Virus record (IMG/VR): IMGVR_UViG_3300024999_000029
Span: 124,001 to 188,000 of that record
Length of the DNA: 64,000 nucleotides
Reading direction: 5' to 3' (one strand)
The notes beneath the pieces were generated by a model that made no database searches, was not told the DNA's origin, and saw nothing but the letters and a program-made list of their open reading frames with translations. Made by a program: the position numbers and the translations under genes. Shown here piece by piece: positions 16,201-62,277 of the stretch (its first letter is position 1; each line of letters begins with the position of its first letter).

Positions 16201-19200
16201 TTATTCATCTGCTGGAAACAAAACAGTAACAACTACTACTACAAACGAAACTTTTTACAGACTTGTATTTGGTATAAATGGGAATGCACAAGATGCTAAA
16301 CTTTATTATAGGCTGAAATTAAAACCTAATACAACATATAAAGCTACTTTAAATATATCTAGTTTTTCAGCGAACTCTATAATTGTTGATAATACTATTC
16401 AAATCGAAGAAAGCTCAACGGTAACTTATGCTACTAGAGTTTACGAACCCTACACAGAATCCACAGCGTACACAACACCAGAGTTACGTAGAGTAGGCAC
16501 AGTAGCAGATACGGTGGATTTGCTTAGTGGGAGGCATACTAAATATATTAGTGATTGGCATAGTTTACAGGCAAGTGATATAACTACGCTTGGAACAACA
16601 AGAACGAACGTAGATACGCTTATAGTAGCGTTACCACTTGCTAAAGCAGCAATTACAGGGGCTACGCAAAATGTTTTTAAAGTGCCAAATTTTAATGCCT
16701 CTACTTTGTCAACTATAATAGATGACATTCAATATATAGGTCAATATGTTTATAGTGCAAGCATAAACGCAAATTTAGTTTTAGTAATTGCAAAAGGTAC
16801 GTACGCAAGCCTAGCAGCAGCACAAACAGCACTTGCAGGGACACAAATACTGTATCAACTAGCAACACCAACTACGACAAATTACCTCCCTAGTACTTTA
16901 ATAAGCGAACCAAACGGAACAATATACACAGAACCTAGCATAACTGATGTAGGTTATTACGGTACAAATATTGCTGTTGCTGACACGGATTATCCTATAA
17001 GCAGTTTAGATTGGATTAATAAAATTGATGTTGATACTGGAGCGTTTATACCTGTGGATATTGCAACATGTACCGTTGCGAGTGGTGGATTGAGTTTTAC
17101 AATTTCGACAGCTACGGTCGATGAGTGTTACGAGTATGCATATAACTACAGTACGGCATTAAGCGTAATACCTAGTTTGGCTTATAGCTATAGCACTAAC
17201 TTAAAAGCACAGGTGAATGAGACGGTTAGTGCGGTGGAGAGGTTGGACAGAAAGATAGAAGAAAAGTCGGCTAATTTAAAAATAGCTACAGAAGCAGAAG
17301 CAGAAGCTGGAACGTCAAATACTGTATTCATGACTCCACTTAGAACAACACAATTAATCGAAAACGCCACATACACAGCAGAAGCAACAACAACACAACA
17401 AGTAACCTCTCTACCATCCACAGCAATGAAATCACCTTTTGCATCAGCAGAGTTAGAAGGTAATACTAATACTAATATAGTCACAAATAGTAATTTTACA
17501 AGTACTGCTGGGTGGACACTAACCGTAGGTGCTACAGTAAGTGCAGCAAATAATGTACTGAACCTTACAGGCAGTGGCAGCAGTAGCTCTCCTCAAACCT
17601 ATCAACAGTCAATTATTCCAGTAGTAACTGGCAAAAAAATGTACATCACAGGGAGAGCTAGGGTTACAAACGCAAATTGCCAATATTTATACATAAAAAT
17701 ATCTGATGGCACTGGAACTACTATAACAGGTTCTCCTGCGGTTGTAGCTGCTCCAGTGCCAAATACGTGGTATACATTTTCGGCAATAGCAACTTGTCAA
17801 GCGTCACTGAGCGGAAATTTTAGAGTGTATTTAATGCATACCTACGTAGACGCCGCCACAGCAAGCGGAAAAGTAATGGAAGTCAAAGAAGTAATGGCAA
17901 TCGATATGGGCGTAGACAGCACCAATCCACTTTACAATCTTACAGCAGACCAGATGAACGCACGTTTTGCTAACTGGTTTGATACTACTAAATCCATTGC
18001 ACCGCAGAGAGTTAAGAGTGTTGGGAAGAATTTGTTTGATAAAAACGATATATTAATTTATGGCAAACGCTTATCTGGAACTGCAAATGGTGCAACAACA
18101 ACAGATGTGACGTATAACGTAACTGGCTATATGCGGGTAAATCCATCTAGTACTTATTGCAAGACGAATTTTGCTAGTACAGTAGCGTTTTATGATAAAA
18201 GCAAAATATTCATATCCGAAGTGTATACAAATCCTTTTACAGTTCCTGCAAATGCGATATATGCTATATCATCCGTACTGGTTGCTAATTTAGATACCGC
18301 ACAACTCGAACTCGGCTCATCCGCAACAACATACGAACCCTACACAGAATCCACAGCGTACACAACACCAGAGTTACGTAGAGTAGGCACAGTAGCAGAT
18401 ACAGTGGATTTGCTGACGGGGAAGTATGCTAAGAATATTAGTGATTGGTATAGTTTACAGGCAAGTGATATAACAGCGCTAATTACAACAGGAGTAAATG
18501 CTGATTATATTCAAACTAACGTTAGTTTTTTACCTTTGGCTAAACCATCTAATGGAACTGTGCAAAATATAATAAAAGTAGGTAATTATCCAGAAACAAC
18601 TATTGCTCTTTTTGACAGTGCAGACTCACATTGGAAATTCGTATACTCTGAAACCGAAAGAATCGTTATTATATTTCCTAAAGGCACATACGCAAGCCTA
18701 GCGGCAGCACAAGCAGCACTAGCAGGGACACAAATACTTTACCAACTAGCAGTACCAACCACCGCAAATTATCTACCTAGCAACCTAACAAGCAAGCCAA
18801 GTGGTACATTATATTTAGAGCCTAGCATAACAGATGTAGGTTACTATGGTGCTAATATTGCTATTGCAGATACGGATTATCCAATTGCAACATTAGATTT
18901 TATGAATAAAATTGATGTCGGTAATGGTACTTTTACGCTTGTAGATATTACAGCTTGTACAGTGGCTAGTGGTGGATTGAGTTTTACTATTAGCGGGGCA
19001 ACGGCTGGTGAGTATTACGAGTACGGTTATAACTATAGCACAGAGTTGAGCGTAATACCTAGTTTGAGTTATAGTTATAGTACTAATTTAAAAGCACAGG
19101 TGAATGAGACGGTTAGTGCGGTGGAGAGGTTGGAGGAAGCGTTAGACGAACTTTTTACGTCTGCCAGTAATGGGAAAACCGCTATTGCATCGGCTATTGC

Positions 19201-20194
19201 TGGCATGGGACAATCTGCAAGTGGAAGCGATACTTTTTTACAACTAGCAACCAAGATAGCTGATATATCAGATGATGCAAATGCTGTAGCATCTCATGTA
19301 TTAGCTGGGGAGACATTCTATCAGGGCGGCAGTAAAAAAACAGGCAATATGATAAGTAAGATTGGTAGTGCAACCGTGATTACTCCATCCACGGTAGACC
19401 AAGCTATAGCACAAGGATATTATGGGGGTTTGGCAGCAGATGGAAAAGTGCTGGGCGATGTAGATTTAGTAACAGGAAATATTAGAGCGGGAGTTAATAT
19501 TTTCGGGGTGGCAGGAAAATCCAGTGTGGTGGAAACTTCTGATGGAGATGCAGTAGCATCAAATATATTAAATGGTAAGAAAGCTTATGTTAATGGAAGT
19601 TTAATTACTGGTAACGTACCTTCAAAAACAGGGGATACTGGATCATTGCCTAGCTCAAATATTGGAGGAGCTTGGGATGGAGCATTGGTATTAGGTACAC
19701 CAAATGGTTTATATAATGGGGAGTGGCACATTCAAATTATAGATAACCTATGGGCTTCTAATATTAAAGCTGGAGTAAAAGTAGGAAATGTTGCAGGATT
19801 AGGTATTGTAGGAACATGTGAGCCTAAAGAGGTTACCGCTGGCGATATAACAATGTTTAGTTATGCGCCTAGTAATACCGCATATGGCACTTCATATTCT
19901 AGGGTAAGGGGGGCTACAGTTCACATAAAAGGTAGCTATAGGGTTAAGTTCGACCTATCTAGTCAAAATGCAGGAGCTACCGCCTACGGCAGAATATATA
20001 TAAATAACACACCAGTGGGTACAGAAAGGTCGACAACATCAACTGACTACACTAATTATGTAGAAGACATTATAAATGTAAACCCCGGAGATATCATAGG
20101 TATATGGGGCAGAGTTGTAGGCAGTACTGGTGCAAGAGTACAGAATTTTGTTTTAGCCGCTGCTCAAAGTATTGTTCCTGTATATACAAATTAG
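13262..20194 (+). CDS. Large modular tail fibre / receptor-binding protein (2310 aa)
   Basis: Upstream of holin/lysin; 14-aa coiled-coil repeats; CBM5/12-like WEAYN...YYPLNKVSWNGSSYIC; two tandem modules of about 630-650 aa; fibre-type C-terminus. Confidence 0.85.
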   Translation: MSYLPNNREFRDPTVFDVRDFAVQRTDINKKIINNRIPLEEKPDIIHHVQISGYTEIFDNSVPTENQFKCDYTNDYLTFNPLKEGVVIPSISYWGLGNILISADKVYLHNDNPDATITLQDMIDDGEQALVAMGGLESVISSATLHEASLEADIVTATSKESSLEADIATATTKKSDLDGSISTATTTKANLDGSNTTALVTKSALDASNTTANTTKTNLDNSNTTALATKTALDLSNTTANNTKTNLDSSILAGDASKTNLDASVILGNTSKSNLDLSISTSITKKADLDSSISTATTKKSDLDASISNANNSKTALDISKANADNSKTALDLSIGTGNALKTNLDSNISTGTTLNTNLGNSISGGNTTKTNLDGSISTATTLNGTLDGTIVTANTSISELNTTNDSFIVWEAYNSTHTYYPLNKVSWNGSSYICLSTCTNILPSNNSYFMLICAKGVDGTGAVMNINSTNSDIAVGNPTGEVLLTLNSGTGAYQIVKLDSNGKIPLAVIPDIAKQQTYVVTDLTARNALTGLVSGDTCYLTSNGDSYIYNGSTWVLMADADWANISLDWTNIVGRPTSSVANIDDAVTKKHSHVNQTILDNTTASFLTADETKLDGISTGANKTESSSTNGNIKVDGIEKTVYTHPSTHSADIIVDGTTNKTYTATEKTKLNSIVIATQEEAESSTSNTTFMTPLRTTQLIENPIYTAEATTTQQVTSLPSTAMKSPFAAAELEGNTNTNIVTNSNFADGTTGWTPQFSTLSTINNILSVTGNGINSAASTYQNTNIDCVEGKKVFARVKLSVTNSNSTLIDLRLLGSLGGTIQIAQQTTPTINQVYELFGIATLTSFNLGKVQIRPVQFYADATTATGKVMEVQEVLAIDMGADSTNPLYNLTADQMNARFANWFDSTKSVGMQRVKSVGKNLFDVNSYNTKSSTGIKVITVDEIAFTTTGNASGSLYFKIYSGLSDYNTVVSTSDYYSSAGNKTVTTTTTNETFYRLVFGINGNAQDAKLYYRLKLKPNTTYKATLNISSFSANSIIVDNTIQIEESSTVTYATRVYEPYTESTAYTTPELRRVGTVADTVDLLSGRHTKYISDWHSLQASDITTLGTTRTNVDTLIVALPLAKAAITGATQNVFKVPNFNASTLSTIIDDIQYIGQYVYSASINANLVLVIAKGTYASLAAAQTALAGTQILYQLATPTTTNYLPSTLISEPNGTIYTEPSITDVGYYGTNIAVADTDYPISSLDWINKIDVDTGAFIPVDIATCTVASGGLSFTISTATVDECYEYAYNYSTALSVIPSLAYSYSTNLKAQVNETVSAVERLDRKIEEKSANLKIATEAEAEAGTSNTVFMTPLRTTQLIENATYTAEATTTQQVTSLPSTAMKSPFASAELEGNTNTNIVTNSNFTSTAGWTLTVGATVSAANNVLNLTGSGSSSSPQTYQQSIIPVVTGKKMYITGRARVTNANCQYLYIKISDGTGTTITGSPAVVAAPVPNTWYTFSAIATCQASLSGNFRVYLMHTYVDAATASGKVMEVKEVMAIDMGVDSTNPLYNLTADQMNARFANWFDTTKSIAPQRVKSVGKNLFDKNDILIYGKRLSGTANGATTTDVTYNVTGYMRVNPSSTYCKTNFASTVAFYDKSKIFISEVYTNPFTVPANAIYAISSVLVANLDTAQLELGSSATTYEPYTESTAYTTPELRRVGTVADTVDLLTGKYAKNISDWYSLQASDITALITTGVNADYIQTNVSFLPLAKPSNGTVQNIIKVGNYPETTIALFDSADSHWKFVYSETERIVIIFPKGTYASLAAAQAALAGTQILYQLAVPTTANYLPSNLTSKPSGTLYLEPSITDVGYYGANIAIADTDYPIATLDFMNKIDVGNGTFTLVDITACTVASGGLSFTISGATAGEYYEYGYNYSTELSVIPSLSYSYSTNLKAQVNETVSAVERLEEALDELFTSASNGKTAIASAIAGMGQSASGSDTFLQLATKIADISDDANAVASHVLAGETFYQGGSKKTGNMISKIGSATVITPSTVDQAIAQGYYGGLAADGKVLGDVDLVTGNIRAGVNIFGVAGKSSVVETSDGDAVASNILNGKKAYVNGSLITGNVPSKTGDTGSLPSSNIGGAWDGALVLGTPNGLYNGEWHIQIIDNLWASNIKAGVKVGNVAGLGIVGTCEPKEVTAGDITMFSYAPSNTAYGTSYSRVRGATVHIKGSYRVKFDLSSQNAGATAYGRIYINNTPVGTERSTTSTDYTNYVEDIINVNPGDIIGIWGRVVGSTGARVQNFVLAAAQSIVPVYTN
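13664..14470 (+). repeat. About 19 degenerate 14-aa (42-bp) tandem repeats
   Basis: xLDxSxxTAxxxKx units, for example DLDGSISTATTTKA, NLDGSNTTALVTKS, DLDSSISTATTKKS. Confidence 0.9.
15293..19134 (+). repeat. Tandem duplication of an approximately 1.9-kb module inside the tail fibre gene (15293-17247 and 17282-19134)
   Basis: Identical blocks include 16442-16512 = 18332-18402 (71 bp) and 17201-17247 = 19088-19134 (47 bp), separated by unrelated variable segments. Confidence 0.92.
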
Positions 20195-49038: not shown

Positions 49039-49281
49039 ATTTCACCTCTCTATAAAATCTGTGTTTCATTGTAATTCTGCGTTTTTATCATAAATTAGCT
49101 CTAAGTGGCTCATATCAGGCTTTTCATCATAGATTATTGCATCTATGATATATCCTATTTCGGAACCGTTGACATCACTGAAGTCCACGATGACTTCCAT
49201 CCATTTTCCATTATCCATTTTTTTAAAGTAGTGTTGTAGCATAACGCCTCTCTTTCATTTCAATAAAACCGCAATTTTAAT

Positions 49282-49575
49282 TTAATCTCTTGTGGTTTCA
49301 AAAGCCATTACATATCCTTCCAAACTAACAAAATCAATAAGTCCATAATTATCGCAATTGGTGCATTCCCAAGGCATAATGCCTCCAAAACTACAAGTAG
49401 GATTCATAAAAAAGTTATCTCTATATTTTTGTAATTCAGGAACTTTTCTAGCATCATCTCCTAGTCCATTAGGATACCATTGACCGTAAAATTGAACTGC
49501 TCCTTTGTGCCTACATTTTATACATCTAACATTTTTATTAATTTCATATAATCTAATTTTAGAGTAATTTTTCAT
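49282..49575 (-). CDS. Hypothetical zinc-binding protein
   Basis: CIKC...CTNC. Confidence 0.6.
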   Translation of the reverse strand: MKNYSKIRLYEINKNVRCIKCRHKGAVQFYGQWYPNGLGDDARKVPELQKYRDNFFMNPTCSFGGIMPWECTNCDNYGLIDFVSLEGYVMAFETTRD

Positions 49576-49604
49576 AGTAACTCCTTTTAAATAAATTTTG
49601 TAAT

Positions 49605-49820
49605 TTATTGAAATTCAACCATATAAAATCTACCTTCAATGAAGGCTTCACTTGGTTCTCCTATAGTTACAATATCATTTTCTTTTAACTCTAAATTGTA
49701 ATGTTCATCAAATTTTATAGGAACAGAATTAACATAAATCTTACCCATGCATACTAATCTTCTAAATTCCGAACGTCCATTTAATGCACCATTTTTATGT
49801 AAAAACCAGAATAAATTCAT
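49605..49820 (-). CDS. S4-like RNA-binding domain protein
   Basis: GRSEFRRLVCMGKIYVN...LKENDIVTIG matches the S4 pattern (SRSEARRLIxxGxVxVN...LxxGDxIxIG). Confidence 0.6.
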   Translation of the reverse strand: MNLFWFLHKNGALNGRSEFRRLVCMGKIYVNSVPIKFDEHYNLELKENDIVTIGEPSEAFIEGRFYMVEFQ

Positions 49821-51055: not shown

Positions 51056-51466
51056 AAATCCTCCTATAAAATATACTTTTGATTTTATTCTTCGTCTTCA
51101 GCTTGATACATTTCCATAGCATCATCATATCCTGACCAATTATCAACTCCACATCCTAAGAGACATTCTAATTTCCATTGGTCATCCAATAAATTTTTAT
51201 ATTCTTTTTCCGAAATAGTTACCATAGGTTCTTTCATAATTTAATTCTCCTTTATTTTATATTTTATTTGATAAAAGCCAAATTTTATTGAGCTATACAA
51301 ACGCTGCAAGCACAACCAAAACATTCCTTTTCTCCATTAGATTTTTCACATTCGTCCATATCACATTTCATTTGTTTTGTAAGCCTTTTAACTATATAGC
51401 CATTATCTATAAGTATTTCAATTGCTTCTTTAATTTTATCTTCCATATTTTTATATTCTCCTTTAA

Positions 51467-51937
51467 CTAATGATCAATAGTTATTTTACCTTGTTCTTGA
51501 CAATGCTCACATCTACAAATTCTCCATCTCCAGCTATCTTCTGCTCCCATGAAACAATGAAATGGGTTTTTATTTTCACAATCATATTCAGTTTCGCCAT
51601 GCCCATTCTTTCGGTTTGACTCTTTTTTTCTGTCTATGAAATTGTAAAAACTACGCCTAACATCAGAATCGTTATCAAATTGATTATAAGTTGTGTGATT
51701 AAACCAATGTAAACACCAAGACTCATGTTCGATATATTTATAACCGATATCTATGAATTCCGTCATATCATATTTTTCTATTAAATGCTTTTTAAATTCA
51801 TTATGTAATTTTTCTATTAACTCTTTTTCTGATGGATCTTCTTTAAACATTATATCTACACTGGAATAATCGTTCTTGCCATCTTTTCTAACCCATTTAG
51901 CATAGAACTTATATATTGCAAATTTTTTATCTTTCAT
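51467..51937 (-). CDS. Hypothetical protein
   Basis: CFMGAEDSWRW..CRCEHC motif. Confidence 0.65.
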   Translation of the reverse strand: MKDKKFAIYKFYAKWVRKDGKNDYSSVDIMFKEDPSEKELIEKLHNEFKKHLIEKYDMTEFIDIGYKYIEHESWCLHWFNHTTYNQFDNDSDVRRSFYNFIDRKKESNRKNGHGETEYDCENKNPFHCFMGAEDSWRWRICRCEHCQEQGKITIDH

Positions 51938-51962
51938 ATCTCTATCCTCTCATTTTATATTT

Positions 51963-52298
51963 TTAATTCCACGTTCTATGTTTTTCACGAATATATTCTC
52001 CTACATCACAGTCATAGGTTTTTATAGTCCACTCAACGCCATCTGGTATTTCTACAATTTTACATATTCTATCTTCATTTTCATATTTATCTCTACCAAC
52101 TACAAAATTTCTTTCTATCATTACTTGATGAAGTTTTTCATCTACTCTTAGATTATTTATTTCATCATGATTTCGTATAAATAAATCCATCCAATAATAT
52201 TTTTCCTCACTATGACCATAAACTTCTCCAAGAATGGTTGCAAAATCTTCTTCCGAATAATGTAGCTCACAATTTACGCCAATTAATATTTTCTGCAT
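51963..52298 (-). CDS. Hypothetical protein
   Basis: KIVEIPDGVEWTI...EYIREKHRTW phage family pattern. Confidence 0.65.
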   Translation of the reverse strand: MQKILIGVNCELHYSEEDFATILGEVYGHSEEKYYWMDLFIRNHDEINNLRVDEKLHQVMIERNFVVGRDKYENEDRICKIVEIPDGVEWTIKTYDCDVGEYIREKHRTWN

Positions 52299-52469
52299 TT
52301 CTACCTCCTATTATCTCTTGTTTTCTCACTCTAGTTTCAATTTGCTAATGCATAATTTAAATCAAATACCATTTTTATTGAAATAATTATCCAAAGTTTT
52401 CCTTCCTCATTAAATATACCACTGCTGTTTTTATTTGTCAACTATTTTATATTTTACTTTATTAAATGT

Positions 52470-54791
52470 TTAATAATTCATTATTTTGATTTCATCTGCC
52501 CAAATATATTTTGATTTAAGGGTTGTTCTATGCTTTATAATCTGTATAAAGTCACCTTTTTTAAATCCATTTTTCTTATACACATCTTTTTTCATTTTAA
52601 TTTCTACCATATTACCCGTAGCTATACCATATAGTTTAATTTTAGGATCAGGATAAGTTTCATCTATGTTTATAACATAACCTTGACCTCTGGGTACTGG
52701 ATAAATAGAAACCATTTTTCCTAAATACTCATTTTCAAATTCTATTTGCTCTTTAATAGATAAAATTTTATCTTCTGTTTGCTTCTCAAATTCTTTAAGA
52801 TACTCTAATCGTTGTAATCTTGTCTTTTCTTTATGAGCTTTACTATACTTCAATTTTCCATCTTTAAATTCTCTATATACTGTAAGTAATTTTTCGTTTC
52901 CTCCAAATTGTTTAAAGTAATTAAGTTTGATAAATATTTCCACTTGTTTAGTATTAGCTAAAGAATTATCAGTAATATAAACTAGTAAATCAATAAAGTC
53001 ATTGTAATTTTCTAAGCACAACTCTATGATATTATCTTTTATATCAGCATTTACAAATTTTATATCACTAGACATAATTTTTGATTTTTTTAATGGTCTA
53101 CTATCCAAGAAATCATTAAGTCTTTTTTGTGCGGTGTCTAAGTAATATTGTTTATCTAATGAATTTGGAACTTTTATACCTATTACACTTTCATTATAAA
53201 TAAAACATTTATCTGGTGTATTTGCTAGTTTTTCAATTTTATCTTCACCTTTAACTTTAAATACTCCCTTTGCATTTTCATCTTTAGAGGCAAATACTCT
53301 CAATACTTTTTCTTTAATTTTTTCTTCACCATGTAAAGCATACTTATATAATCTCGATATTTTAACTACTTTTTGAAAATCTCTTAATTCATCACACTCA
53401 TTTATAGTGTCTTCTATAGGTTTGTTTTTTACAAAATAATTTATCAATGCTTTATTTACAATAGGTAAATCGTAATCTATATTACTTAGTTTCTTAACAT
53501 ATGCTCCTTTTGACTTGTATTCACCTTTATCATTTATAATAATATAGTTATTAACATCTTTTTGATAAATTTTATTATAAATATCCCACTCTAAATCTAG
53601 TCTAGTACGTTTTTCCCACTCTTTTGCTACTGATTTTATTTTTTCTATTTTATCTAAATTATCAATTTTAATAAACAAACCATCTGTATTCGATTGTATT
53701 AATTCTCCATATGGTTCTATTTTCTCAATCAAATCCAACAATAATAATTGTCCCGCCACACAAATATTATTTGCCATGAGTGGATCATACAGAGGATTAT
53801 ATTGATCTTTCATTGCACCATATGTAGCATTAACTACTATTTTTAAAGGAACATGCATTGGATTTTTTTCTGCTTTTAATTTTAATCTTAAATCTCTTAT
53901 TTCTCTATATTTTTCTTGTTCAGTTACATTCCTACTCATATAACCATATTCAATGATAATAGAAGGATATAGACTGGCTACATCGCAACACAGAATAATT
54001 CCTTCTCCCATGTAATTATCATTTGAACCATGAATGCCTCCCCATGCAAATGTATGTGGAATTCCTGCAACTTCTGCATGTAATTCCTTATTATACTTCT
54101 TATTATCATCATTTTTATACCAATCAACTATGTATTTATATTTATCTGATATTCTTAAAGTATCAGGTATAGAAATATCAAATTCATCATCTCGACTTTC
54201 TCCTCTAATTGCTCCCAAAACATACGCAGACAACTGAGCTTTAGTCTTATTAAACATTGTCATTGATAAATCAAATGCTTTCAATAAGGACAATTGACTA
54301 TCAAATTCCTCTTTTCTATTATCAAAAACTTTTATAGTTTCTTCCACATCATGTGTACAATATTCTACAACTTCTTGAATCTCTTCCTCGGTAAGTTTTC
54401 TATCTAAATCAAAAGGAACATCTGATTCTTTAATTTTAGAACCCATAAACGCTTCTAACTGTTTTAAACTATGAAATCCAGTCGAAACATCGAAATTATT
54501 TAAAGGGAATAGTTCAGCTTTTCTAACAATCTGATATCCTTTTTTATCTTCGTTTATTAGTTGGTTACTAACTTTATATGGTTCCATATCTTTCAATATA
54601 GCTTTCAATATAAACTGATCATATTGTCTACTGTTGTATCCACAAAAGATACTATTCATATTTTCATTGTAGAATTTTTTTAATTCCACTGAATTATTGA
54701 TAATAACTTTTTTTTCATTTGTTTCATGTTCAATAAATACAACTAACCATAGATACTTAAAAACTTCAAAGTCAAAAAATACTAATTTCAT
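52470..54791 (-). CDS. Family B DNA polymerase with a C-terminal DnaE-like (HhH/OB) extension
   Basis: Exonuclease FFDFEV, GYNSRQYD, YCTHDV; polymerase DVASLYPS, KIVVNATYG, SNTDG, KSKG; about 210 extra aa IKFVNA...FIDLL...LNYFKQFG...EYLG. Confidence 0.88.
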   Translation of the reverse strand: MKLVFFDFEVFKYLWLVVFIEHETNEKKVIINNSVELKKFYNENMNSIFCGYNSRQYDQFILKAILKDMEPYKVSNQLINEDKKGYQIVRKAELFPLNNFDVSTGFHSLKQLEAFMGSKIKESDVPFDLDRKLTEEEIQEVVEYCTHDVEETIKVFDNRKEEFDSQLSLLKAFDLSMTMFNKTKAQLSAYVLGAIRGESRDDEFDISIPDTLRISDKYKYIVDWYKNDDNKKYNKELHAEVAGIPHTFAWGGIHGSNDNYMGEGIILCCDVASLYPSIIIEYGYMSRNVTEQEKYREIRDLRLKLKAEKNPMHVPLKIVVNATYGAMKDQYNPLYDPLMANNICVAGQLLLLDLIEKIEPYGELIQSNTDGLFIKIDNLDKIEKIKSVAKEWEKRTRLDLEWDIYNKIYQKDVNNYIIINDKGEYKSKGAYVKKLSNIDYDLPIVNKALINYFVKNKPIEDTINECDELRDFQKVVKISRLYKYALHGEEKIKEKVLRVFASKDENAKGVFKVKGEDKIEKLANTPDKCFIYNESVIGIKVPNSLDKQYYLDTAQKRLNDFLDSRPLKKSKIMSSDIKFVNADIKDNIIELCLENYNDFIDLLVYITDNSLANTKQVEIFIKLNYFKQFGGNEKLLTVYREFKDGKLKYSKAHKEKTRLQRLEYLKEFEKQTEDKILSIKEQIEFENEYLGKMVSIYPVPRGQGYVINIDETYPDPKIKLYGIATGNMVEIKMKKDVYKKNGFKKGDFIQIIKHRTTLKSKYIWADEIKIMNY

Positions 54792-54793
54792 AG

Positions 54794-55657
54794 TTATTCT
54801 CCTATATATCTTTCACTGTATTGGCAATTTCTATTTTGACCGCAAACCCATGAACACCAGAACTCGGAAGCTTCTTCACCTTTTAACCATTTAACTTCAT
54901 TATAAATATTAGCGATAGTATTAATTACCCAGTTTTTACTTCTTTCAAAATCATCCTTATTAAACTCAAACTTATACCAATCTTTAATTTTAAACATATT
55001 AAAATTCAGATATTTGGGATATTCTCCATATTTTTCATAAAAAGGTATGCAATACAAATAAAGTTGAATCACCATACTAAAAGGAAGGAATCTTCCATCT
55101 GTTAATTCTACGAAATCTTCTTTGTTTTCTCCTTTTTTTATTGCATTATTTACTTGTCTTTGTGTTTTATCTTGTTCACTTTTAGATTTATGGTCAACAA
55201 TTTCAAACCACCCATTTTTATTTTTTAGTTCTAAGTCAACAACACCTGTAAAATCGTATTTATCTATTTTATAATCATATTTATGTTCTACATCTAATAC
55301 TTCATAACAATCATCTAATCCATTAAAATCACTAAAATATTCTTTTCCTTGTTCAAAATACTTAGCTGCTAAATCAACATATTTATTAGGTGGAAAATAT
55401 GCTGTAACTTTAGAGGTAAATTCATCAACATATTTATCTTTTAGTTCAAAACTACATAATTTATTTTTAAAATAATCCTCTAACAATTCATGTCCAAATG
55501 AGCCATATTGTCCAAACGCCCCATCTGTTGATTTTTTCTTCAAAATATATGTAAGATAAAAACATTGTGGACATCTTTCACATGTTTCTAATCTTGAGTA
55601 TGAAAAAATCATCTGATCCAAAATGAAATCATATTCTCCCAACTTAATTACCTCCAA
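54794..55657 (-). CDS. PD-(D/E)xK exonuclease (Cas4/RecB-like)
   Basis: FSYSRLETCERCP, GSFGH, GVVDL...IVDHKS, QLYLY and C-terminal CSWVC...C. Confidence 0.85.
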   Translation of the reverse strand: MEVIKLGEYDFILDQMIFSYSRLETCERCPQCFYLTYILKKKSTDGAFGQYGSFGHELLEDYFKNKLCSFELKDKYVDEFTSKVTAYFPPNKYVDLAAKYFEQGKEYFSDFNGLDDCYEVLDVEHKYDYKIDKYDFTGVVDLELKNKNGWFEIVDHKSKSEQDKTQRQVNNAIKKGENKEDFVELTDGRFLPFSMVIQLYLYCIPFYEKYGEYPKYLNFNMFKIKDWYKFEFNKDDFERSKNWVINTIANIYNEVKWLKGEEASEFWCSWVCGQNRNCQYSERYIGE

Positions 55658-56639
55658 GTTTTATTTTTTTGTTGTATAATTCATTCCATACAGTTAGTCC
55701 TCTATCTACAGGTGCATCTTTATATTTTAATAATCCTTGTTCATCATAAATAACATTTATAGCTGTAAACTTTAATAATTTGGCGCAATTTTCTTTTATA
55801 TTTTCTATTATTACGTTTTTATCTAAAGCAATTGTAATTTCACACTTTAATTCTAGTAGTAATCTTAATTGATATTCGTTAATATGACTGGTAGCTAATG
55901 CCACGACGTTATTTATTCCCCACCCCTCTAGTTTCCAAACAGATTTTTCCGACTCAACAACTATTACTTCTTTTTTCTCTTTTATAAATTCAATGTTATT
56001 ATTTAATCCAAATAAAAAATCATTAGTTCCAAGTTTGTAATAATATAAATATTTTTTAATACCTAGTTCTTTAAACTTTTCATATAATGACCGTCCTTTT
56101 ATATTTATTATTTTTCCTTCTTTATTAATTATTGGAAATACTGCTCTATTACTTCTAGAATCATATCTCACTTGATATTTATCCATTATTTCTGGCAATA
56201 TTCCTTCTTCCAACCATTCATATATAGGCTGATTATCATACTTATTCATAATATTATCAGGTAAAATTTCATGCACAACTTTAGTTGTATTTTTTTTATT
56301 AAATTTTCTTAATATTTTTATGCTTTCAAATTCTTCTTTAAATTGAGATATATCTGTACCTGTATAATTAATTAAATATTCTACTGCTTGTGGAAAATTT
56401 AATTTATGATATTTCATTATAAAATCAATAATTGTAGAAGTCGCTCCACATCCAAAACAAAAAAACATTCGTTTGTCTAAAGATACAGAAAATGAAGCAG
56501 TATTTTCGTCATGAAAAGGACACATGCCAAAATAATCCCTTCCATGACGAGTTAATTGAACATATTGGCTTATATAATCAACTATATTTACTTTTTCTAT
56601 CAACTCTTGTAATAAATCTTGACCATATTCTTTATACAT
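55644..56639 (-). CDS. dnaG: DNA primase (CHC2 zinc finger plus Toprim)
   Basis: CPFHDENTASF...CFGCG; VVESEKS; IALDK. Confidence 0.9.
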   Translation of the reverse strand: MYKEYGQDLLQELIEKVNIVDYISQYVQLTRHGRDYFGMCPFHDENTASFSVSLDKRMFFCFGCGATSTIIDFIMKYHKLNFPQAVEYLINYTGTDISQFKEEFESIKILRKFNKKNTTKVVHEILPDNIMNKYDNQPIYEWLEEGILPEIMDKYQVRYDSRSNRAVFPIINKEGKIINIKGRSLYEKFKELGIKKYLYYYKLGTNDFLFGLNNNIEFIKEKKEVIVVESEKSVWKLEGWGINNVVALATSHINEYQLRLLLELKCEITIALDKNVIIENIKENCAKLLKFTAINVIYDEQGLLKYKDAPVDRGLTVWNELYNKKIKLGGN

Positions 56640-56656
56640 ATAAGACCAATCCTTAA

Positions 56657-58012
56657 TTATAATGGGAACTCTTGTACAGTATGTTGAGTTACAACTTGTT
56701 CTATAGTGGCTAAATTACCATTAAATGATAAATCAATATATTCTTCGTCTGTATTAGTCATTTGCTCACCATTTCTATTCAATTTAACAAATAATTTATA
56801 ATTACCACACTGTTGTCCATCTCTAATAATTTCTTCAGGTAATTTAGGTATTAAGTTTATTATAGAACTAGCATATTGCTCAATCTTATAACTATCTGCA
56901 ATCTCATTACCTCTGTTTAATTGACCTCCCGCAAGTACTGCCATGTTTAATCCTCCAGCAATATCATTTTTCAAGAAGTTTGTTTTATTTCCAAGATCAT
57001 TATATTGTCCTGTACTATCTCCAGCATTACTTTTCAAATAGTCATACACTACAAATTGTAGTCCCATTTTATATTGAAGTATTTTACATGTTGTATATAT
57101 TTTATCATTTGTCCATGATGGGCTATACATATGTACAAATGGAGCAGATTTAATAAAAGTTAATGCATCTTGTATTATAAGTTCTTCTGTATGTGTATAA
57201 CTTCCAGTTTTAATCTTAAATACTGGTATTTGAGTCAAATGAGCAAGCATTCTTTCCATGAAGTTTCTGCTAGACATTTCAGTATCTATATAAAGAGTCG
57301 GTACTTTATTTTTTAGTTTATGTACTGACTCATTCATCATAAACATTGATTTACCAGTTTTACGAGGGGCAGCAACGATGATGAGTTCTCCTCTATCGTA
57401 TGGACAATATTTATTTTGTAATTCATATTTAGAAGGTATACCATATAGTTCTTTCCCATGTTGTCTTTTCATTGTTTCTTGCCACAGGTTATCAACTTTT
57501 TCACCAAACAATTCAATATCGTTAGTAATTACATATTCTTCTGCAAGTTTATTTAAACCATTATAAACAAAAGTATTAAGCTCACCTAAATCGTAGTTAT
57601 CATCAAAACAACTCTTTTGAAATTCTTGTAATTTTTTATATAAATCACGCTTAAAAGCTAAAGTTACAACTTTTTGAACTACTATTGTATATTCTTCAAT
57701 ACTATCTCTAGCTACATGTTGCGATAAATCAACTAATTCTTGTATGGAATTAATGTTAAAGTTTTCAATAGTTTTTTTTACTCCTTCGTTACTATTAAGC
57801 ATAGTAGTCAAATTGAAAACATCTATATTTTCTACTCCAGATTTATATAATTCATCAATTGCCCAATATATACAAGCGTTTTCTTTATTATAAAAATGTT
57901 TAGCTTTTAAATATTCACTATGTAATATAAAGTCTGGATGATATATTAACGTACTAATTACTCCTGATTCAGATTGACTGTCCTTTATTTCTGATATTTT
58001 CAAATACATCAC
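56657..58012 (-). CDS. DnaB-like replicative helicase
   Basis: AAPRKTGKS Walker A, YIDTEM, VYDYLK, QLNR and VKLNRNG motifs. Confidence 0.9.
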   Translation of the reverse strand: MMYLKISEIKDSQSESGVISTLIYHPDFILHSEYLKAKHFYNKENACIYWAIDELYKSGVENIDVFNLTTMLNSNEGVKKTIENFNINSIQELVDLSQHVARDSIEEYTIVVQKVVTLAFKRDLYKKLQEFQKSCFDDNYDLGELNTFVYNGLNKLAEEYVITNDIELFGEKVDNLWQETMKRQHGKELYGIPSKYELQNKYCPYDRGELIIVAAPRKTGKSMFMMNESVHKLKNKVPTLYIDTEMSSRNFMERMLAHLTQIPVFKIKTGSYTHTEELIIQDALTFIKSAPFVHMYSPSWTNDKIYTTCKILQYKMGLQFVVYDYLKSNAGDSTGQYNDLGNKTNFLKNDIAGGLNMAVLAGGQLNRGNEIADSYKIEQYASSIINLIPKLPEEIIRDGQQCGNYKLFVKLNRNGEQMTNTDEEYIDLSFNGNLATIEQVVTQHTVQEFPL

Positions 58013-58476
58013 CCCTTAAAAAGTTTATTCCAACTATTGTTTTCAACATTAGAATTGAATGTTATTTCATCTTGAAATTTTATATTTTCAATTGTAGTGT
58101 TTTTAGTTTGTTTCATTAACTCATTTGCTTTTGTTTTATAATATTCTTCTTTCATTTTTGTGTTGTTAATTATATAGTGCAATCCAGATGCGTGATTTAA
58201 TGGTAATTTATTGCGTATTACATACTTTATTGCAAATAATAATAAATCACTTGCTACGTTTTTTTCATCAATAATCATATTTATTGTTTTATTTAAACTA
58301 GATGCAACTTCCGTCTTGTTGATATGTTCAAAAAATAATTGTCTAACTTCATTTTTATTAGTTGCTTCTTGTAAACACTCTACATGATAATACCTATTTT
58401 TGTGTTTAACAGCTATTTCTTCACTTACTTCATTATTAAATTTACATTGATTATAAGCACATTTAAATACTTTCAT
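58009..58476 (-). CDS. Hypothetical replication protein (possible helicase loader)
   Basis: N-terminal CxxxxC..RYYHVEC; coupled to the helicase. Confidence 0.55.
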   Translation of the reverse strand: MKVFKCAYNQCKFNNEVSEEIAVKHKNRYYHVECLQEATNKNEVRQLFFEHINKTEVASSLNKTINMIIDEKNVASDLLLFAIKYVIRNKLPLNHASGLHYIINNTKMKEEYYKTKANELMKQTKNTTIENIKFQDEITFNSNVENNSWNKLFKG

Positions 58477-58524
58477 AGGATTTCTAGGGGAGAGATTAAT
58501 CTCCCCATCCTCCTTAAATTTTGA

Positions 58525-58941
58525 TTAGAATGGTAATTCATCGTCATTGACTACGGTGAAAAAATTGTCATCGTTACTATTGTTTGTAGATTGAGATTTA
58601 ACCTGCCCATTTTCATCTTTTTTAGAATCTCCGAAATAAACTTCATCTGCAACTACTTCTGTAGCATAGTGTTTTTTATTGTCATTATCTTCCCAAGAAC
58701 GAGTTTGAAGTCTACCAACTACTACTGCCATTCTTCCCTTGCTAAAATACTTACTTACAAATTCACCTGTTTTATTCCAAGCAACTATAGGAATAAAATC
58801 AGCCTGTTTTTCTTCGCCTTGTTTTGCAAACTTATCTACAGCCAAAGTAAAACTACAAACTGGTATATTATTGGAACTTGTGTATCTTAGCTCTGGATCT
58901 TTCGTAAGTCTTCCCATTAAAATTACCTTGTTTAAATTCAT
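58525..58941 (-). CDS. ssb: Single-stranded DNA-binding protein
   Basis: NKVILMGRLTKDPELRYT...GRLQTRSWE...DDELPF tail. Confidence 0.95.
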   Translation of the reverse strand: MNLNKVILMGRLTKDPELRYTSSNNIPVCSFTLAVDKFAKQGEEKQADFIPIVAWNKTGEFVSKYFSKGRMAVVVGRLQTRSWEDNDNKKHYATEVVADEVYFGDSKKDENGQVKSQSTNNSNDDNFFTVVNDDELPF

Positions 58942-58970
58942 AAATTAATTCCTCCACTTTTATATTTTAT

Positions 58971-59993
58971 TTATTTTTTAATTTTATTTAACTCAGAATA
59001 CATTTCTTTTGCTACATTTAAATCTTTTATATTGTTTGGATTTCCTTTGTAATCTTTAAGTGCATCTAATACAGCATCTCGATTAATTTGTGCTTTTTCC
59101 TTTGCTATATTTAATAATTCAGCTTTTAATTGATCAAGTGTAAAACCTTCAATATCCTTTAACTCTTTATTTTCTATTTCTTTCACTTCTTCTTTAACCT
59201 TATTGGACACTTCTTTTAGTTCATTCTCTTCATTGGCTTTCATATCATCTTTTATTTTTTGTCTCTCTTTTATTATTGAATCCATTTGATTCTTACCATC
59301 CCCCAATGCCCATTTGCAAAGTTTTTCACCATGTTTTTCATCTAATACTAGTGCTTCTCCCTCAAACAAATGTGTATTATCTTTTGCCGTAGTAGCTATA
59401 TGAGTATCTAAATCAAGAATAAATGAAGTAATAAATAAATACTCTGTATTTTTTCTTTGGTCGTAACCTAGCGGAATTTTTCTCACTACTTGCTTACCAT
59501 TAATCTCTTCTTGCACATACTTATCATCGCCTCTAACTGTAGCAAAAATATGTATATTACTATCTAAAATTTTATCCATAAATGCTTCATGTCTAGGTGT
59601 AACAGTTCTCCATGCTGTATAAGAATTTCCAGGGATTTTAGCATGAATTTCTAAACAACCACCTTTACCACTCCACTCATGAGTAATACTATCTATAATT
59701 AAAATTTTATATCCAGCAGCAACCGCTTCATCTATAGCAGCTATGTATTTTTCTGGAGTATAAGGTGCAGTAATATCCATTATGTCGTAATCATATTCGT
59801 TAGCGTATAATTTACCTCTATTGGGTTCTGAGTTTATAAAAGCGATTCTCTCATTTTTACCTGTTTGTTTTGATAGTTCTTTAGCGAATCCAGAAGCTAA
59901 TTTGAGAGATGTATATGATTTACCTCCTCCAGAACTCGCAATTTGTAAACCTTTAAACCACATATAATCTCTAGTTGCTTTAACGAATGCCAT
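58971..59993 (-). CDS. AAA-family ATPase (Sak4-like recombination/annealing protein)
   Basis: SSGGGKSYTS Walker A; IIDSITHEW; HIFATVRG. Confidence 0.8.
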   Translation of the reverse strand: MAFVKATRDYMWFKGLQIASSGGGKSYTSLKLASGFAKELSKQTGKNERIAFINSEPNRGKLYANEYDYDIMDITAPYTPEKYIAAIDEAVAAGYKILIIDSITHEWSGKGGCLEIHAKIPGNSYTAWRTVTPRHEAFMDKILDSNIHIFATVRGDDKYVQEEINGKQVVRKIPLGYDQRKNTEYLFITSFILDLDTHIATTAKDNTHLFEGEALVLDEKHGEKLCKWALGDGKNQMDSIIKERQKIKDDMKANEENELKEVSNKVKEEVKEIENKELKDIEGFTLDQLKAELLNIAKEKAQINRDAVLDALKDYKGNPNNIKDLNVAKEMYSELNKIKK

Positions 59994-60019
59994 AAATAAT
60001 TTTCCTCCTGTTTTATATT

Positions 60020-60616
60020 TTATTTTATTACTTTTTCAAGTAAATAACTTGATTCATAATCAGCAGTATGTAAGGCAATTATTGCGGGATATTTTTCTGC
60101 TGCCTTATTATAAGCTTGTTTCATTTCATATTCTTCAGGTACTCCCATGTGAAATAATATTGCCATTACTTCAAACTCTGATAGCGGGATAAATTTTTGA
60201 AGAATTATAACTGATTTTGCTCCATGCCCTAAAGGTAACTGGTCGTCGATCTCCCATACCTCTTTTTCTATCCAATTATCAACTTCTTTACCATATCCAT
60301 TGATTTTTTTACCGTCTTTAACGTTTTTAATCCCTTTTTTGTAGAATAAATTTTTGCATAAATCATGACATATTCCACAAATAGTTATTGTATCTTGCGT
60401 CAATCCTAGTCCAAATCTTTCATTTTTCTCGCTAAAAAGTTCTCGTACTAACCATGAATGATCATATAATCCTCCATCATAATTAGAGTGATATTTACTA
60501 GATGCTGGAGCCGTAAAGTAATCTGTTTTGTTTTCAAGATAATCAATTAATTTATCAATTCCTTCTCTTTTAACAGACTTTAACGCATCAAGTATTTTTT
60601 CTTTGTATTCGCTCAT
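60020..60616 (-). CDS. HD-domain phosphohydrolase
   Basis: FTAPASSKYH...GLYDHS...CHDLCK...GHGAKS...HMG...HTAD. Confidence 0.88.
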   Translation of the reverse strand: MSEYKEKILDALKSVKREGIDKLIDYLENKTDYFTAPASSKYHSNYDGGLYDHSWLVRELFSEKNERFGLGLTQDTITICGICHDLCKNLFYKKGIKNVKDGKKINGYGKEVDNWIEKEVWEIDDQLPLGHGAKSVIILQKFIPLSEFEVMAILFHMGVPEEYEMKQAYNKAAEKYPAIIALHTADYESSYLLEKVIK

Positions 60617-60757
60617 CCTTACTCCTTTCATTCTTTTTTATATTTAAACCCTTGCGGGATTACCTAAAGTAAATATATTTAAATTGTAAAAACATTAAGC
60701 AATCTATATTAACCCTCCATCCTCCGCTCCTACCTCCACAATAAATGTCCTTTCAGG

Positions 60758-60979
60758 TTATATTTTTGCTTCCTCTTCAACTTTTTCTTCGGGTTCCTTT
60801 TTTACTTCTTCAATCTTATCCACTATATATTTAGCGTTTTCATGCTTGCCATCTTTGTTGAATTTAGTTACACCCATTAAAATTCTAACTGCTGATAGTT
60901 CATTTAATGCTTCGACCAAAGTTGTTCTAGTCATTGGGTTATATCTAGTCTTTTCTGTGTAAGTGATATTAAATTTCAT
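60758..60979 (-). CDS. Hypothetical protein
   Basis: SD aaaggaga. Confidence 0.6.
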   Translation of the reverse strand: MKFNITYTEKTRYNPMTRTTLVEALNELSAVRILMGVTKFNKDGKHENAKYIVDKIEEVKKEPEEKVEEEAKI

Positions 60980-61029
60980 ATTTTTCTCCTTTAAGTTTTA
61001 TATTTTTGTTTTAACATGAAAAATTATTT

Positions 61030-61230
61030 GCCCCTGTATATGATTCCGCATATACTTTAACGGTCTGGCAGACCGAACCTTTTGTCTCACCTGAGTTATC
61101 CACAAGCTATTACAAGTGGAACAATATCATTTGGCATCGATCCAAACTCCCTTCACACCAGTCCTCGGTCAGCGAGCAAGATTTGAACTTACCTCCTGGT
61201 ATAATAAAGGGCATTAACCCGTATTACCTT
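61030..61230 (-). ncRNA. Candidate structured ncRNA with a tRNA-like T-arm
   Basis: GC-rich intergenic island; on the minus strand GTAAG-TTCAAAT-CTTGC plus hairpins tttgg/ccaaa, ccac/gtgg, cggtct/agaccg and gtatatg/catatac. Confidence 0.45.
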
Positions 61231-61242
61231 AAAATGAAAATT

Positions 61243-62040
61243 TTATTGAAATATTGATTTCTGCAAGCTTACAGTCGCAAGGGTTTCAATTTTATTAATT
61301 CTTCCCAGTATGCGATTTTGAGCTATTTCGTAGTAATTTTTATCTAATTCAAACCCTATGTAATTTCTATTAGTATTTATAGCTGCAACTGCAGTTGTTC
61401 CTGAACCAATACAGTTATCTAGGACTATTTCTCCTTCGTTTGTATATGTGTTAATTAGCCATTCACACAACTCTACTGGCTTTTGAGTAGGGTGCAAAGA
61501 TATTGATGGATGAGGTTTTGAAAACTCTAATATAGATGTTGGAAATTTCATATCCCCTTTAGTTTCAACACATTTAAAATCTCCATAATTATTATTTTGC
61601 AAAACAGCATCATTCATTTTTCCTACAACACTACCTTTTTTATGACACGGATTGCCTTTAACCTTTTGTGGATTGTATATTGGTTGCTTTTTATAAAATA
61701 TCATTATGTCTTCATGTTCTCTTAATGGTTGTCTATTAGCATTTAAAAATCCACTTGATAAAACTTTCTTCCATATTAAATTATATCTATGTATTTTTTT
61801 ATTCGATAATATTGTCTCTGCAGTAAATTTATCTTGACCAAATAAAATTATCGCTCCATTATCTTTGATAATCCTTTCATACTGCTCCCATAGTAGTTGA
61901 TAAGAAATTATTGTATCCCACTTATTTTTTGTAGTTACTCCATAAGGTAAGTCACAAAGAATCATATCTATTGATTTATCGTCTATAAGCTTCATGCCTT
62001 CTAAACAATCTTGGTTATATATCTTGTTTAACTCAATCAT
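61243..62040 (-). CDS. N6-adenine/N4-cytosine DNA methyltransferase (beta class)
   Basis: DLPYG, HPTQKP and LDNCIGSGTT motifs. Confidence 0.92.
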   Translation of the reverse strand: MIELNKIYNQDCLEGMKLIDDKSIDMILCDLPYGVTTKNKWDTIISYQLLWEQYERIIKDNGAIILFGQDKFTAETILSNKKIHRYNLIWKKVLSSGFLNANRQPLREHEDIMIFYKKQPIYNPQKVKGNPCHKKGSVVGKMNDAVLQNNNYGDFKCVETKGDMKFPTSILEFSKPHPSISLHPTQKPVELCEWLINTYTNEGEIVLDNCIGSGTTAVAAINTNRNYIGFELDKNYYEIAQNRILGRINKIETLATVSLQKSIFQ

Positions 62041-62277
62041 TTATACCTCGTTATTTTATATTTTATTTAATTAAGACAGAACGAGAATTTGATATTAATT
62101 TAAACTATAATGCATAAAACTCATTGCTGAAATTAAAAACGCAACTCCCATTTCAACTTTGTTAGGACAATATCCAAAGAACAACGATACAAATAAAATT
62201 AAATAGTATAAACAAAATAGTATATTTAAAACCTTACCCATAGTTTTCTCCTTTCCATAAAAATCCGATTTTATTAA

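Follow-up and report, generated by a model that had tools for sequence, protein, structure and literature searches.

Can the C-terminal tail of one replicative DNA polymerase family be carried by the catalytic core of another, unrelated family? This question is raised by a single gene in a 64,000-nt stretch of IMG/VR virus record IMGVR_UViG_3300024999_000029 (positions 124,001 to 188,000 of the record; hereafter, the window). A preliminary description, made from the sequence alone, proposed that the gene joins a complete family B polymerase (PolB), ending at about position 53105, to the C terminus of a family C (DnaE) enzyme, and that a polB gene had displaced the catalytic part of an ancestral dnaE in situ while keeping its C-terminal domains, perhaps to preserve replisome contacts. 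We found that the fusion is real and that most of this interpretation holds, although the displacement did not happen in this phage and the role of the tail is inferred. The features of the locus are collected in Table 1.

Table 1. Features of the hybrid polymerase locus (window coordinates)
Feature	Coordinates	Strand	Residues	Supporting observations
Hybrid polymerase gene (PolB core, linker and DnaE-type tail in one ORF)	52470-54791	-	773 aa	100% match in the whole record with no stops
Family B polymerase core: DEDDy 3'-5' exonuclease (aa ~1-165) followed by palm/fingers/thumb with motifs A, B, C and KxY	53103-54791	-	1-563	phrog_1252, E 2.7e-164; PDB 1s5j, E 6e-6
Basic linker (DSRPLKKSKIM S)	53070-53102	-	564-574	Corresponds to the basic C-terminal peptide of stand-alone PolBs (GISNRKKKAKKEK-stop); the DNA holds an A7 run
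Tail part 1: predicted tandem helix-hairpin-helix (HhH) region starting at the SDIKF hairpin (equivalent to IKGVG of bacterial DnaE)	52860-53069	-	575-644	Model helices 582-593, 599-609, 614-622 and 632-644; tail profile aligns to M. tuberculosis DnaE1 851-916 and Taq alpha 886-956; Pfam HHH_6 weak, E 0.11 (below threshold)
Tail part 2: two predicted linker helices, including the conserved KTK.KRL and EQ..FE.EYLG motifs that precede the OB fold in DnaE	52686-52859	-	645-702	
Tail part 3: predicted five-stranded OB fold	52473-52685	-	703-773	Model strands 703-710, 717-722, 728-733, 748-756 and 763-771; OB-fold matches Z 7-8.6 and Taq alpha up to residue 1122; lacks ~20 aa that other hybrids have before the last strand
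PD-(D/E)XK nuclease	54794-55657	-		PF12705, E 7.7e-16; phrog_69; stop lies 2 nt before the polymerase start
DnaG-type primase	55644-56639	-		PF01807, E 6e-32; phrog_47
DnaB-type replicative helicase	56657-58012	-		PF03796 and PF00772; phrog_19, E 1.4e-53
Single-strand DNA-binding protein (SSB)	58525-58941	-		PF00436, E 1.9e-33
AAA_24 ATPase (YorG-like), first gene of the conserved module	58971-59993	-		PF13479; phrog_1366; 45% identity to the homologue on contig L010
Conserved block just past the polymerase stop, marking the 3' border of the swapped replication module	52364-52479	-		88% identical to the block after RecD2 in the sibling genome; near-consensus promoter (TTGACA-17-TATATT); unitigs break here and depth is summed
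Join between the two phage genomes concatenated in the 349-kb record (record 173,265-173,607)	49265-49607			Repeats both ends of the record; unequal depths of the two halves

We first asked whether the N-terminal part is a complete PolB. All the motifs named in the preliminary description are present, and in an alignment of four hybrids the following are invariant: Exo I D7/E9, Exo II N53/Y57/D58, Exo III Y144/D148, motif A D270-S277 (DVASLYPS), motif B K317/N321/G325 (KIVVNATYG), and motif C T369/D370 (SNTDG, residues 367-371, in which the first Asp is replaced by Asn). The KxY motif is represented by KSKGAY (residues 426-431). The core is 55% identical to the stand-alone 563-aa enzyme of Paenibacillus phage Wanderer (gp63), 53% identical to that of Staphylococcus phage PI-Sepi-HH2, and 51.5% identical to that of Bacillus phage BMBtp15. 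The phrog_1252 match spans residues 2-564, and tblastn matches to stand-alone phage PolBs all stop at 558-564, corresponding to nt ~53103, close to where the preliminary description had placed the boundary. Matches to curated family B profiles were weaker, and this is a divergent phage subgroup: PF00136 scored 17 bits, below the 23-bit cutoff, although precomputed PF00136 hits exist on some close homologues; the NCBIfam Pol II profile matched with an E value of 0.002; and among solved structures, Pol II matched with an E value of 0.04, behind Sulfolobus PolB (1s5j). The canonical PolB N-terminal domain is absent, with Exo I starting at residue 7, but minor bacterial and phage PolB groups also lack this domain (PMC12926913), so it is not required for membership.

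We next examined the ~210 residues that follow in frame. In the phage collection, they match only the C termini of genes annotated as DNA polymerase III alpha (78 records; best E value, 6e-34), and by pairwise BLASTP residues 575-773 are 41% identical (E 5e-36) to residues 800-979 of the 1,014-residue Geobacillus virus E3 DnaE (GP96). Similarity to the DnaE-type enzymes of SPbeta (YorL), Tsamsa-like Bacillus phages and phiCD211 is lower, at 30-36% identity. Profile searches placed the tail at positions 870-1057 of 1190 in phrog_405 and at positions 779-894 of 974 in the DnaE profile NF005516. While phmmer of the tail alone against PDB gave only chance hits, the tail model (pLDDT 94) is predicted to form two HhH motifs, linker helices and an OB fold; its best match is Taq Pol III alpha 882-1122 (Z 8.9 over 192 residues), and M. 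tuberculosis DnaE1 and Taq alpha top the Foldseek list. The PHP domain, the Pol-beta-like palm (PF07733) and the fingers (PF17657) are all absent, and the hybrid is therefore not a family C polymerase. The structural match ends before the tau-binding subdomain of Taq alpha, and no beta-clamp-binding motif (QL[SD]LF-like) was seen in the tail by eye, without a motif search; the only conserved residues in that stretch are R661, L662 and L665. An internal start at M572, just before the tail, was rejected, since the Met is not conserved and no ribosome-binding site is evident.

The gene occupies the slot that DnaE fills in collinear modules with the order AAA_24-SSB-DnaB-DnaG-PD-(D/E)XK nuclease-polymerase. 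A full DnaE is found in this position in Geobacillus virus E3, on contig L010, and in a sibling genome within the same record. The L010 module proteins are 31-59% identical to those of the window, and its DnaE tail is 42-47% identical to the hybrid's tail; L008 and L009 carry the hybrid, as does the window. A second pair is formed by L014, which carries the hybrid, and the DnaE module of the sibling genome: the two are collinear, with flanking proteins 50-74% identical, RecD2 downstream in both, and tails 40% identical. In addition, tail-less PolBs of 571-605 aa, 64-67% identical to this core, occupy the same slot in Bacillus subtilis-group SPbeta-like prophages (for example, L012), with no tail within 10 kb. 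Stand-alone enzymes of this type, which are 51-67% identical over the whole core, end 10-20 residues after KRLNDFLG.

The presence of both polymerase types in one 349-kb record could suggest a jumbo phage with two polymerases. However, the record is two related ~175-kb phage genomes joined, and its halves are collinear copies, one carrying DnaE (C1:7085-10414), which is the only PF07733 match in the record, and the other carrying the hybrid. The DnaE region has read depths of 53-58x, 3-4x and ~0 in sequencing runs X1, X2 and X4, respectively, whereas the hybrid region has depths of 35-39x, 6-7x and 5-6x. The two genomes differ by a swap of the whole replication module. No other polymerase core is in the hybrid's half of the record, and no beta-clamp family was detected in the record, although a host clamp cannot be excluded.

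To determine how widespread the architecture is, we searched public sequence collections and found at least 52 database proteins (cluster representatives) with the PolB core plus tail, originating from JGI, ENA, MGnify, Logan and NCBI, on contigs of up to 167 kb. Database hits of ~200-300 aa that looked like free-standing tail proteins do not support a separable tail protein: the two that were inspected are DnaE genes with a single in-frame stop (TAG in contigs L020/L021, TAA in L019) 6-19 codons before the called tail ORF, and others are cut by contig ends. In a tree of the cores, 48 tail-bearing cores form one clade (SH-aLRT 98), sister to 20 tail-less Bacillus-type cores. In contrast, hybrid tails sit in at least 4-5 places among DnaE tails, and the AU test rejects a single clade (P = 0.016); this P value is moderate, and the trees are quick-search trees on 224 columns. 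The hybrids share the junction and the first helix, while the rest of the tail matches the local DnaE lineage (46% against 26%), and a ~26-aa insert is shared only by one group of hybrids (clade II) and their DnaE relatives. The shared junction could reflect one origin or a structurally forced breakpoint.

We are confident that the gene encodes a natural cross-family hybrid polymerase, in which a phage PolB is joined through its own basic C-terminal peptide to the last ~200 residues of a phage DnaE. Comparison suggests that in an SPbeta-like replication module a polB gene replaced the 5' ~2.4 kb of dnaE (PHP, palm, thumb, fingers) and left the 3' ~0.6 kb in frame. In a refinement of the preliminary description, this would be an older event, after which the PolB core with its junction seems to have moved into other dnaE-bearing modules by crossover inside the conserved HhH-coding region, so that each hybrid now carries the tail lineage of its own module. 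The hybrid most likely works with the adjacent DnaB helicase, DnaG primase, SSB and nuclease. The PolB core would synthesize and proofread, and the tail, inferred to hang from the end of the thumb near the exiting duplex, would hold the enzyme on DNA (HhH on duplex, OB on single strand) and/or dock it to a module-specific partner. These roles are inferred in the absence of biochemical data; the full-length model, built from a four-sequence alignment, was too poor to position the tail relative to the core (pLDDT 44.7), and a predicted complex of the tail with DnaB and DnaG gave no verdict (score, 0.21).

It is possible, though we consider it unlikely, that the tail is mainly a by-product of how the PolB cassette spreads: if homologous crossover needs the conserved HhH-coding stretch of the resident dnaE, the 3' end would be left behind and carried along with little or no function. 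The mosaic pattern, which places crossovers inside the tail, is consistent with this view, as are the tail-less PolBs of the sister clade, which indicate that the core does not strictly need the tail, and the faster divergence of the tail than of the core (41-47% against 68-72% identity). However, DnaE tails diverge about as fast as their own cores, so the faster rate is a property of DnaE tails and need not mean decay. Moreover, a neutral remnant of 600 nt would be expected to collect stops and deletions, yet 48 of 49 members of the hybrid clade keep an intact in-frame tail, the one exception being on a 2.7-kb contig, and tails that have drifted to ~26% identity still fit one profile and give a confident fold, with the HhH hairpin Lys/Gly and the hydrophobic core conserved.

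An artifactual merger of polB with an adjacent dnaE remnant, through misassembly, a sequencing error at the A7 run or a chimeric contig, was a concern, because the record itself is misjoined 3 kb away and two contigs in run X2 end at 53052-53065, next to the junction. This possibility is very unlikely: single unitigs in X1 (52392-53706; depth, 38.5) and X4 (52387-53664) cross the junction with no differences, X4 lacks the other genome, and dozens of independently assembled homologues at 60-72% identity keep the same frame and linker. It is likewise improbable that the hybrid is an accessory or repair enzyme while replication relies on host Pol III or the DnaE of the same record. Bacterial PolBs are usually accessory enzymes (PMC12926913), but that DnaE belongs to a different phage population, and the hybrid sits in the replicase slot of the helicase-primase operon, immediately after the nuclease gene, with all catalytic residues kept.

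In situ replacement of a phage polymerase by one of another family, with gene order kept, is known from Caudoviricetes (Yutin et al. 2024, Virol J 21:200, PMC11348598), including the clade with Spbetavirus, where family C is taken as ancestral, and en bloc swaps with helicase, primase and exonuclease, such as the one seen between the two genomes in this record. That work reports whole-gene swaps (A/B, A/C, and within a family); the terms "fusion" and "C-terminal" do not occur in its text, and no B-for-C partial swap is described. Here, only the catalytic part was replaced, and we found no report of such a hybrid in the literature searched, which was incomplete. A precedent for one C-terminal accessory domain attached to unrelated polymerase cores is the domain shared by PolD DP2, eukaryotic PolB catalytic subunits and archaeal B6/B10 PolBs, including a case in which a PolB with that domain seems to have replaced DP2 (Kazlauskas et al. 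2020, PMC7544198). However, that domain is a Zn-binding helical bundle that binds the B-subunit, and the families (B/D) and cellular lineages are different.

More tentatively, it is possible that the HhH-OB tail of phage DnaE is a self-contained, core-independent replisome module for tethering to DNA and/or to a module-specific partner, which a PolB cassette uses both as a functional adaptor and as a recombination landing pad. In this view, the cassette has repeatedly taken over dnaE genes in at least three different replication-module types of SPbeta-like phages, and a second, very distant PolB class (868-894 aa) has acquired DnaE tails independently. If so, catalytic cores of replicases would be interchangeable parts, and the accessory tail would define the replisome.

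Families B and C have unrelated catalytic folds, and the tail seems able to serve both polymerase engines. The same module is now known with DnaE, with the hybrid and with tail-less PolB, allowing direct comparison and raising the question of why some SPbeta-like phages keep the tail while others (Bacillus prophages) replace DnaE completely. A compact proofreading PolB with built-in HhH and OB DNA-binding domains may also interest enzyme engineers. The hybrid extends polymerase swapping in tailed phages from whole genes to parts of genes and points to a concrete route of spread, crossover in the conserved HhH-coding region. A natural protein that combines a B core with a C tail, and persists in dozens of lineages, is a ready-made experiment that can show which parts of a replicase carry catalysis and which carry integration into the replisome.

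The polymerase gene of the window is a single ORF of 773 aa on the minus strand, and its start lies 2 nt after the stop of the upstream gene. Residues 2-564 match phrog_1252 "DNA polymerase" at E 2.7e-164. A tblastn search of 50,697 phage records returned 1,252 matches, all of which stop at residue 558-564, and none of which covers 80% of the protein. The best of these are stand-alone enzymes, namely, those of Paenibacillus phage Wanderer (563 aa, 55% identity), Staphylococcus phage PI-Sepi-HH2 (53%), and Bacillus phage BMBtp15 (51.5%). The exonuclease motifs and polymerase motifs A, B, C, and KxY are present and are invariant in four hybrids. We note that curated family-B profiles match only weakly (Pfam, 17 bits against a cut-off of 23; PDB 1s5j, E 6e-6); this is a divergent phage PolB subgroup without the canonical N-terminal domain.

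We next asked what the remainder of the protein resembles. When searched alone, residues 565-773 hit 78 phage records, and in every listed record that carries annotation, the hit falls in the 3' end of a gene annotated as DNA polymerase III alpha/DnaE, PHP-domain protein, or DNA polymerase. The best hit is GP96 of Geobacillus virus E3, an enzyme that has PHP, palm, fingers, and HHH_6; by BLASTP, residues 575-753 align to residues 800-979 of 1014 at 41% identity (E 5e-36). Other matches are to positions 870-1057 of 1190 in PHROG phrog_405 and to positions 779-894 of 974 in the NCBIfam DnaE profile, and a 65-sequence tail profile aligns to the HhH region of Mycobacterium tuberculosis DnaE1 and Taq alpha. 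An AlphaFold2 model built from 64 tails is confident (pLDDT 94, pTM 0.86) and shows four helices forming two helix-hairpin-helix motifs, two linker helices, and a five-stranded OB fold. Foldseek ranked M. tuberculosis DnaE1 (7pu7) and Taq Pol III alpha (4iqj) first for this model, and VIA-align placed 4iqj_D first, with Z 8.9 over 192 residues (model 1-208 against Taq 882-1122). The tail therefore covers the HhH part of the clamp-binding domain and the OB fold but stops before the tau-binding subdomain. No clamp-binding motif was seen by eye, and no clamp gene was detected in the record. The tail of the window also lacks ~20 residues that the other three aligned hybrids have before the last OB strand, although the model still closes the barrel.

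Stand-alone PolBs end in ...KRLNDFLG followed by a short basic peptide, while the hybrid reads ...KRLNDFLD-SRPLKKSKIMS-SDIKFVN..., so the whole PolB, including its basic end, runs into DnaE at the first HhH hairpin (SIK, the IKGVG equivalent). The sequence comes from groundwater metagenomes, and an assembly artefact could in principle produce such a fusion. However, Logan unitigs of two sequencing runs, X1 (depth 38.5) and X4, cross the junction without a difference. Moreover, independent homologues with the same frame and linker exist in several sources, including JGI contigs of 76.6, 27.5, and 167 kb and ENA contigs of 128 kb, with further ones in MGnify, Logan, and NCBI. Of 140 PolB-core proteins collected, 52 carry a tail by profile search.

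Coordinates of the hybrid polymerase gene and of the other features discussed in the text
Feature	Sequence	Coordinates	Strand
Hybrid polymerase ORF	window	52470-54791	-
Junction of PolB core and tail	window	~53069-53102
X1 unitig crossing the junction	window	52392-53706
X4 unitig crossing the junction	window	52387-53664
Region of the tail lacking ~20 residues (aa ~750-773)	window	52473-52540
Near-consensus promoter with a TG extension (TTGACA-17-TATATT)	window	52413-52441	-
Join of the two genomes	window	~49,265-49,607 (record 173,265-173,607)
First repeat pair at the join	record	1-132 and 173,476-173,607
Second repeat pair at the join	record	173,265-173,384 and the record's end
Replication modules exchanged en bloc	record	4,531-19,830 against 175,267-186,275 (window 51,267-62,275)
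ORF of 2310 aa	window	13262-20194	+
Direct repeats in the 2310-aa ORF	window	~15,293-17,247 and ~17,282-19,134
Tail-less PolB in the YorL (DnaE) slot	L012; L013	10001-11725; 10001-11725
Distant PolB class with a DnaE-type tail	L016	1266-3929
LAGLIDADG homing-endonuclease gene	L008	9474-10004
In-frame stop in dnaE	L020; L021; L019	852-854; same; 1780-1782

In transcription order, the window has an N6/N4 methyltransferase, an HD-like protein, an AAA_24 ATPase, SSB, a 155-aa protein, DnaB helicase, DnaG primase, a PD-(D/E)XK nuclease, and the hybrid polymerase. Two related contigs, L008 and L009, have the same order with the hybrid, while a third, L010, has the same order with a full DnaE of 1065 aa. 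The module proteins of L010 are 31-59% identical to those of the window, and its DnaE tail is 42-47% identical to the hybrid's tail; the window is no more similar than that to the hybrid-bearing modules of L008 and L009, whereas among hybrids the PolB cores are 68-70% identical. Geobacillus virus E3 has helicase, primase, exonuclease, and DnaE in that order. In L008, a LAGLIDADG homing-endonuclease gene sits between the PD-(D/E)XK nuclease and the hybrid polymerase gene and is a possible driver of local recombination.

The 349,050-bp record, rated 99% complete by CheckV, is collinear with itself at an offset of 157-181 kb; most of the 90 homologous ORF pairs, which have 21-98% identity, lie at that offset, and sequences at both ends of the record are repeated at the join. 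Unitig depths of the two halves change independently across three runs: the DnaE region has 53-58x, 3-4x, and ~0 in X1, X2, and X4, respectively, while the hybrid region has 35-39x, 6-7x, and 5-6x. We conclude that the record is not a jumbo phage but two related, collinear phage genomes of ~173 and ~176 kb joined at a shared sequence. Genome 1 carries AAA_24, YorH-like, DnaB-like, primase, PD-(D/E)XK, DnaE (1109 aa), and RecD2, while genome 2 carries the hybrid module described here, and the hybrid is the only polymerase found in genome 2. The DNA flanking the modules is 84-91% identical between the two genomes, with a promoter-like block on one side and a methyltransferase gene, 92% identical at the protein level, on the other, but the modules themselves share no DNA similarity. 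This is an en bloc module swap of the kind published by Yutin et al. 2024 (PMC11348598). The near-consensus promoter lies 30-57 nt after the polymerase stop, inside the block conserved between the two genomes, where unitigs of both genomes meet. Elsewhere in the window, a 2310-aa ORF contains internal direct repeats about 1.9-2.0 kb apart that are 80-93% identical in DNA.

A second before/after pair is provided by L014, a 167-kb contig with an integrase that is collinear with the module of genome 1: flanking proteins are 50-74% identical, and RecD2 is 60% identical. L014 has an 815-aa hybrid where genome 1 has DnaE, and the two tails are 40% identical. Another contig, L017, shows a third module type, with YorE, YorF, and a RecJ-like exonuclease, and also carries a hybrid followed by RecD2. 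In contrast, in SPbeta-like prophages carried by many Bacillus subtilis-group genomes, the YorL (DnaE) slot is filled by a tail-less PolB of 574 aa, which is 64-67% identical to the core of the window and is named "hypothetical" or "DNA polymerase domain-containing protein" in databases. The local order is YorE ... AAA_24, YorH, DnaB, primase, PD-(D/E)XK, and then PolB, followed by a 3D-domain protein and YorP, and no tail exists in any frame nearby.

To trace the history of the two parts, we built separate trees for cores and tails. In the core tree (75 rows), the 48 tail-bearing cores form one clade (SH-aLRT 98), together with one short protein from a 2.7-kb contig; this clade is sister to 20 tail-less Bacillus-type cores (SH-aLRT 98), and Wanderer and PI-Sepi-HH2 lie outside. 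In the tail tree (181 rows), hybrid tails lie in at least four or five places among DnaE tails. Clade I (31 PolB-attached tails, including the window) is next to the L010 DnaE, clade II (10) lies within a 99-supported group with the DnaE of genome 1, and clade III (8) and clade IV (2) sit elsewhere. A second, very distant PolB class of 868-894 aa (core ~25% identical) has tails in yet another DnaE lineage and is probably an independent hybrid. The AU test rejects a single clade for the 51 close hybrid tails (p 0.016). Several phage DnaE proteins of 1250-1680 aa have 250-700 extra residues between the fingers and the tail, or inside the core, and inteins or homing-endonuclease insertions near the same boundary are likely. 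Some metagenomic dnaE genes have one in-frame stop (TAG or TAA) 6-19 codons before the called tail ORF; the TAG case is seen in two independent assemblies, and these stops could represent recoding, read-through, a pseudogene, or a true split gene.

The tail alignment revealed a mosaic. Hybrids of clades I, II, and IV share the linker, the SDIKF hairpin, and the first helix, but from the F.DLL motif onward, each clade resembles its own DnaE lineage. Clade II is 46% identical to its DnaE relatives and 26% identical to clade I, clade I is 44% identical to the L010 DnaE, and a ~26-aa insert is found only in clade II hybrids and their DnaE relatives. Clade III has a different junction and lacks the first hairpin. 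Although these are quick-search trees on short alignments and the number of events is approximate, the simplest reading is that there was one original fusion, that the PolB core plus junction was then transferred repeatedly into other dnaE genes with a crossover inside the HhH region, and that at least one further independent junction formed.

Whole-gene and en bloc polymerase swaps in tailed phages are published, including in the SPbeta-like clade, where family C is taken as ancestral (PMC11348598), but that text has no mention of a fusion or of a partial B-for-C replacement. The surveys that we read describe no PolB with an HhH-OB tail (PMC4889955, PMC7544198, PMC12926913). The nearest conceptual precedent is the C-terminal domain shared by PolD DP2 and eukaryotic or archaeal PolBs. 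The parts of the hybrid are known, whereas the hybrid itself, which is real and recurrent, is apparently undescribed.

The tail-less Bacillus enzymes show that the core can do without the tail, and the match between tail lineage and module fits co-adaptation but fits equally well with the geography of recombination. The hybrid combines intact catalytic motifs with a conserved tail that is confidently predicted to fold, and it occupies the replicase slot of a DnaB/DnaG operon in a genome in which no other polymerase or clamp was found. We infer that the PolB core replicates and proofreads, while the tail may bind duplex DNA (HhH) and single-stranded DNA (OB), as these domains probably do in bacterial Pol III alpha, and/or contact a module-specific partner, a possibility on which a complex prediction gave no verdict.
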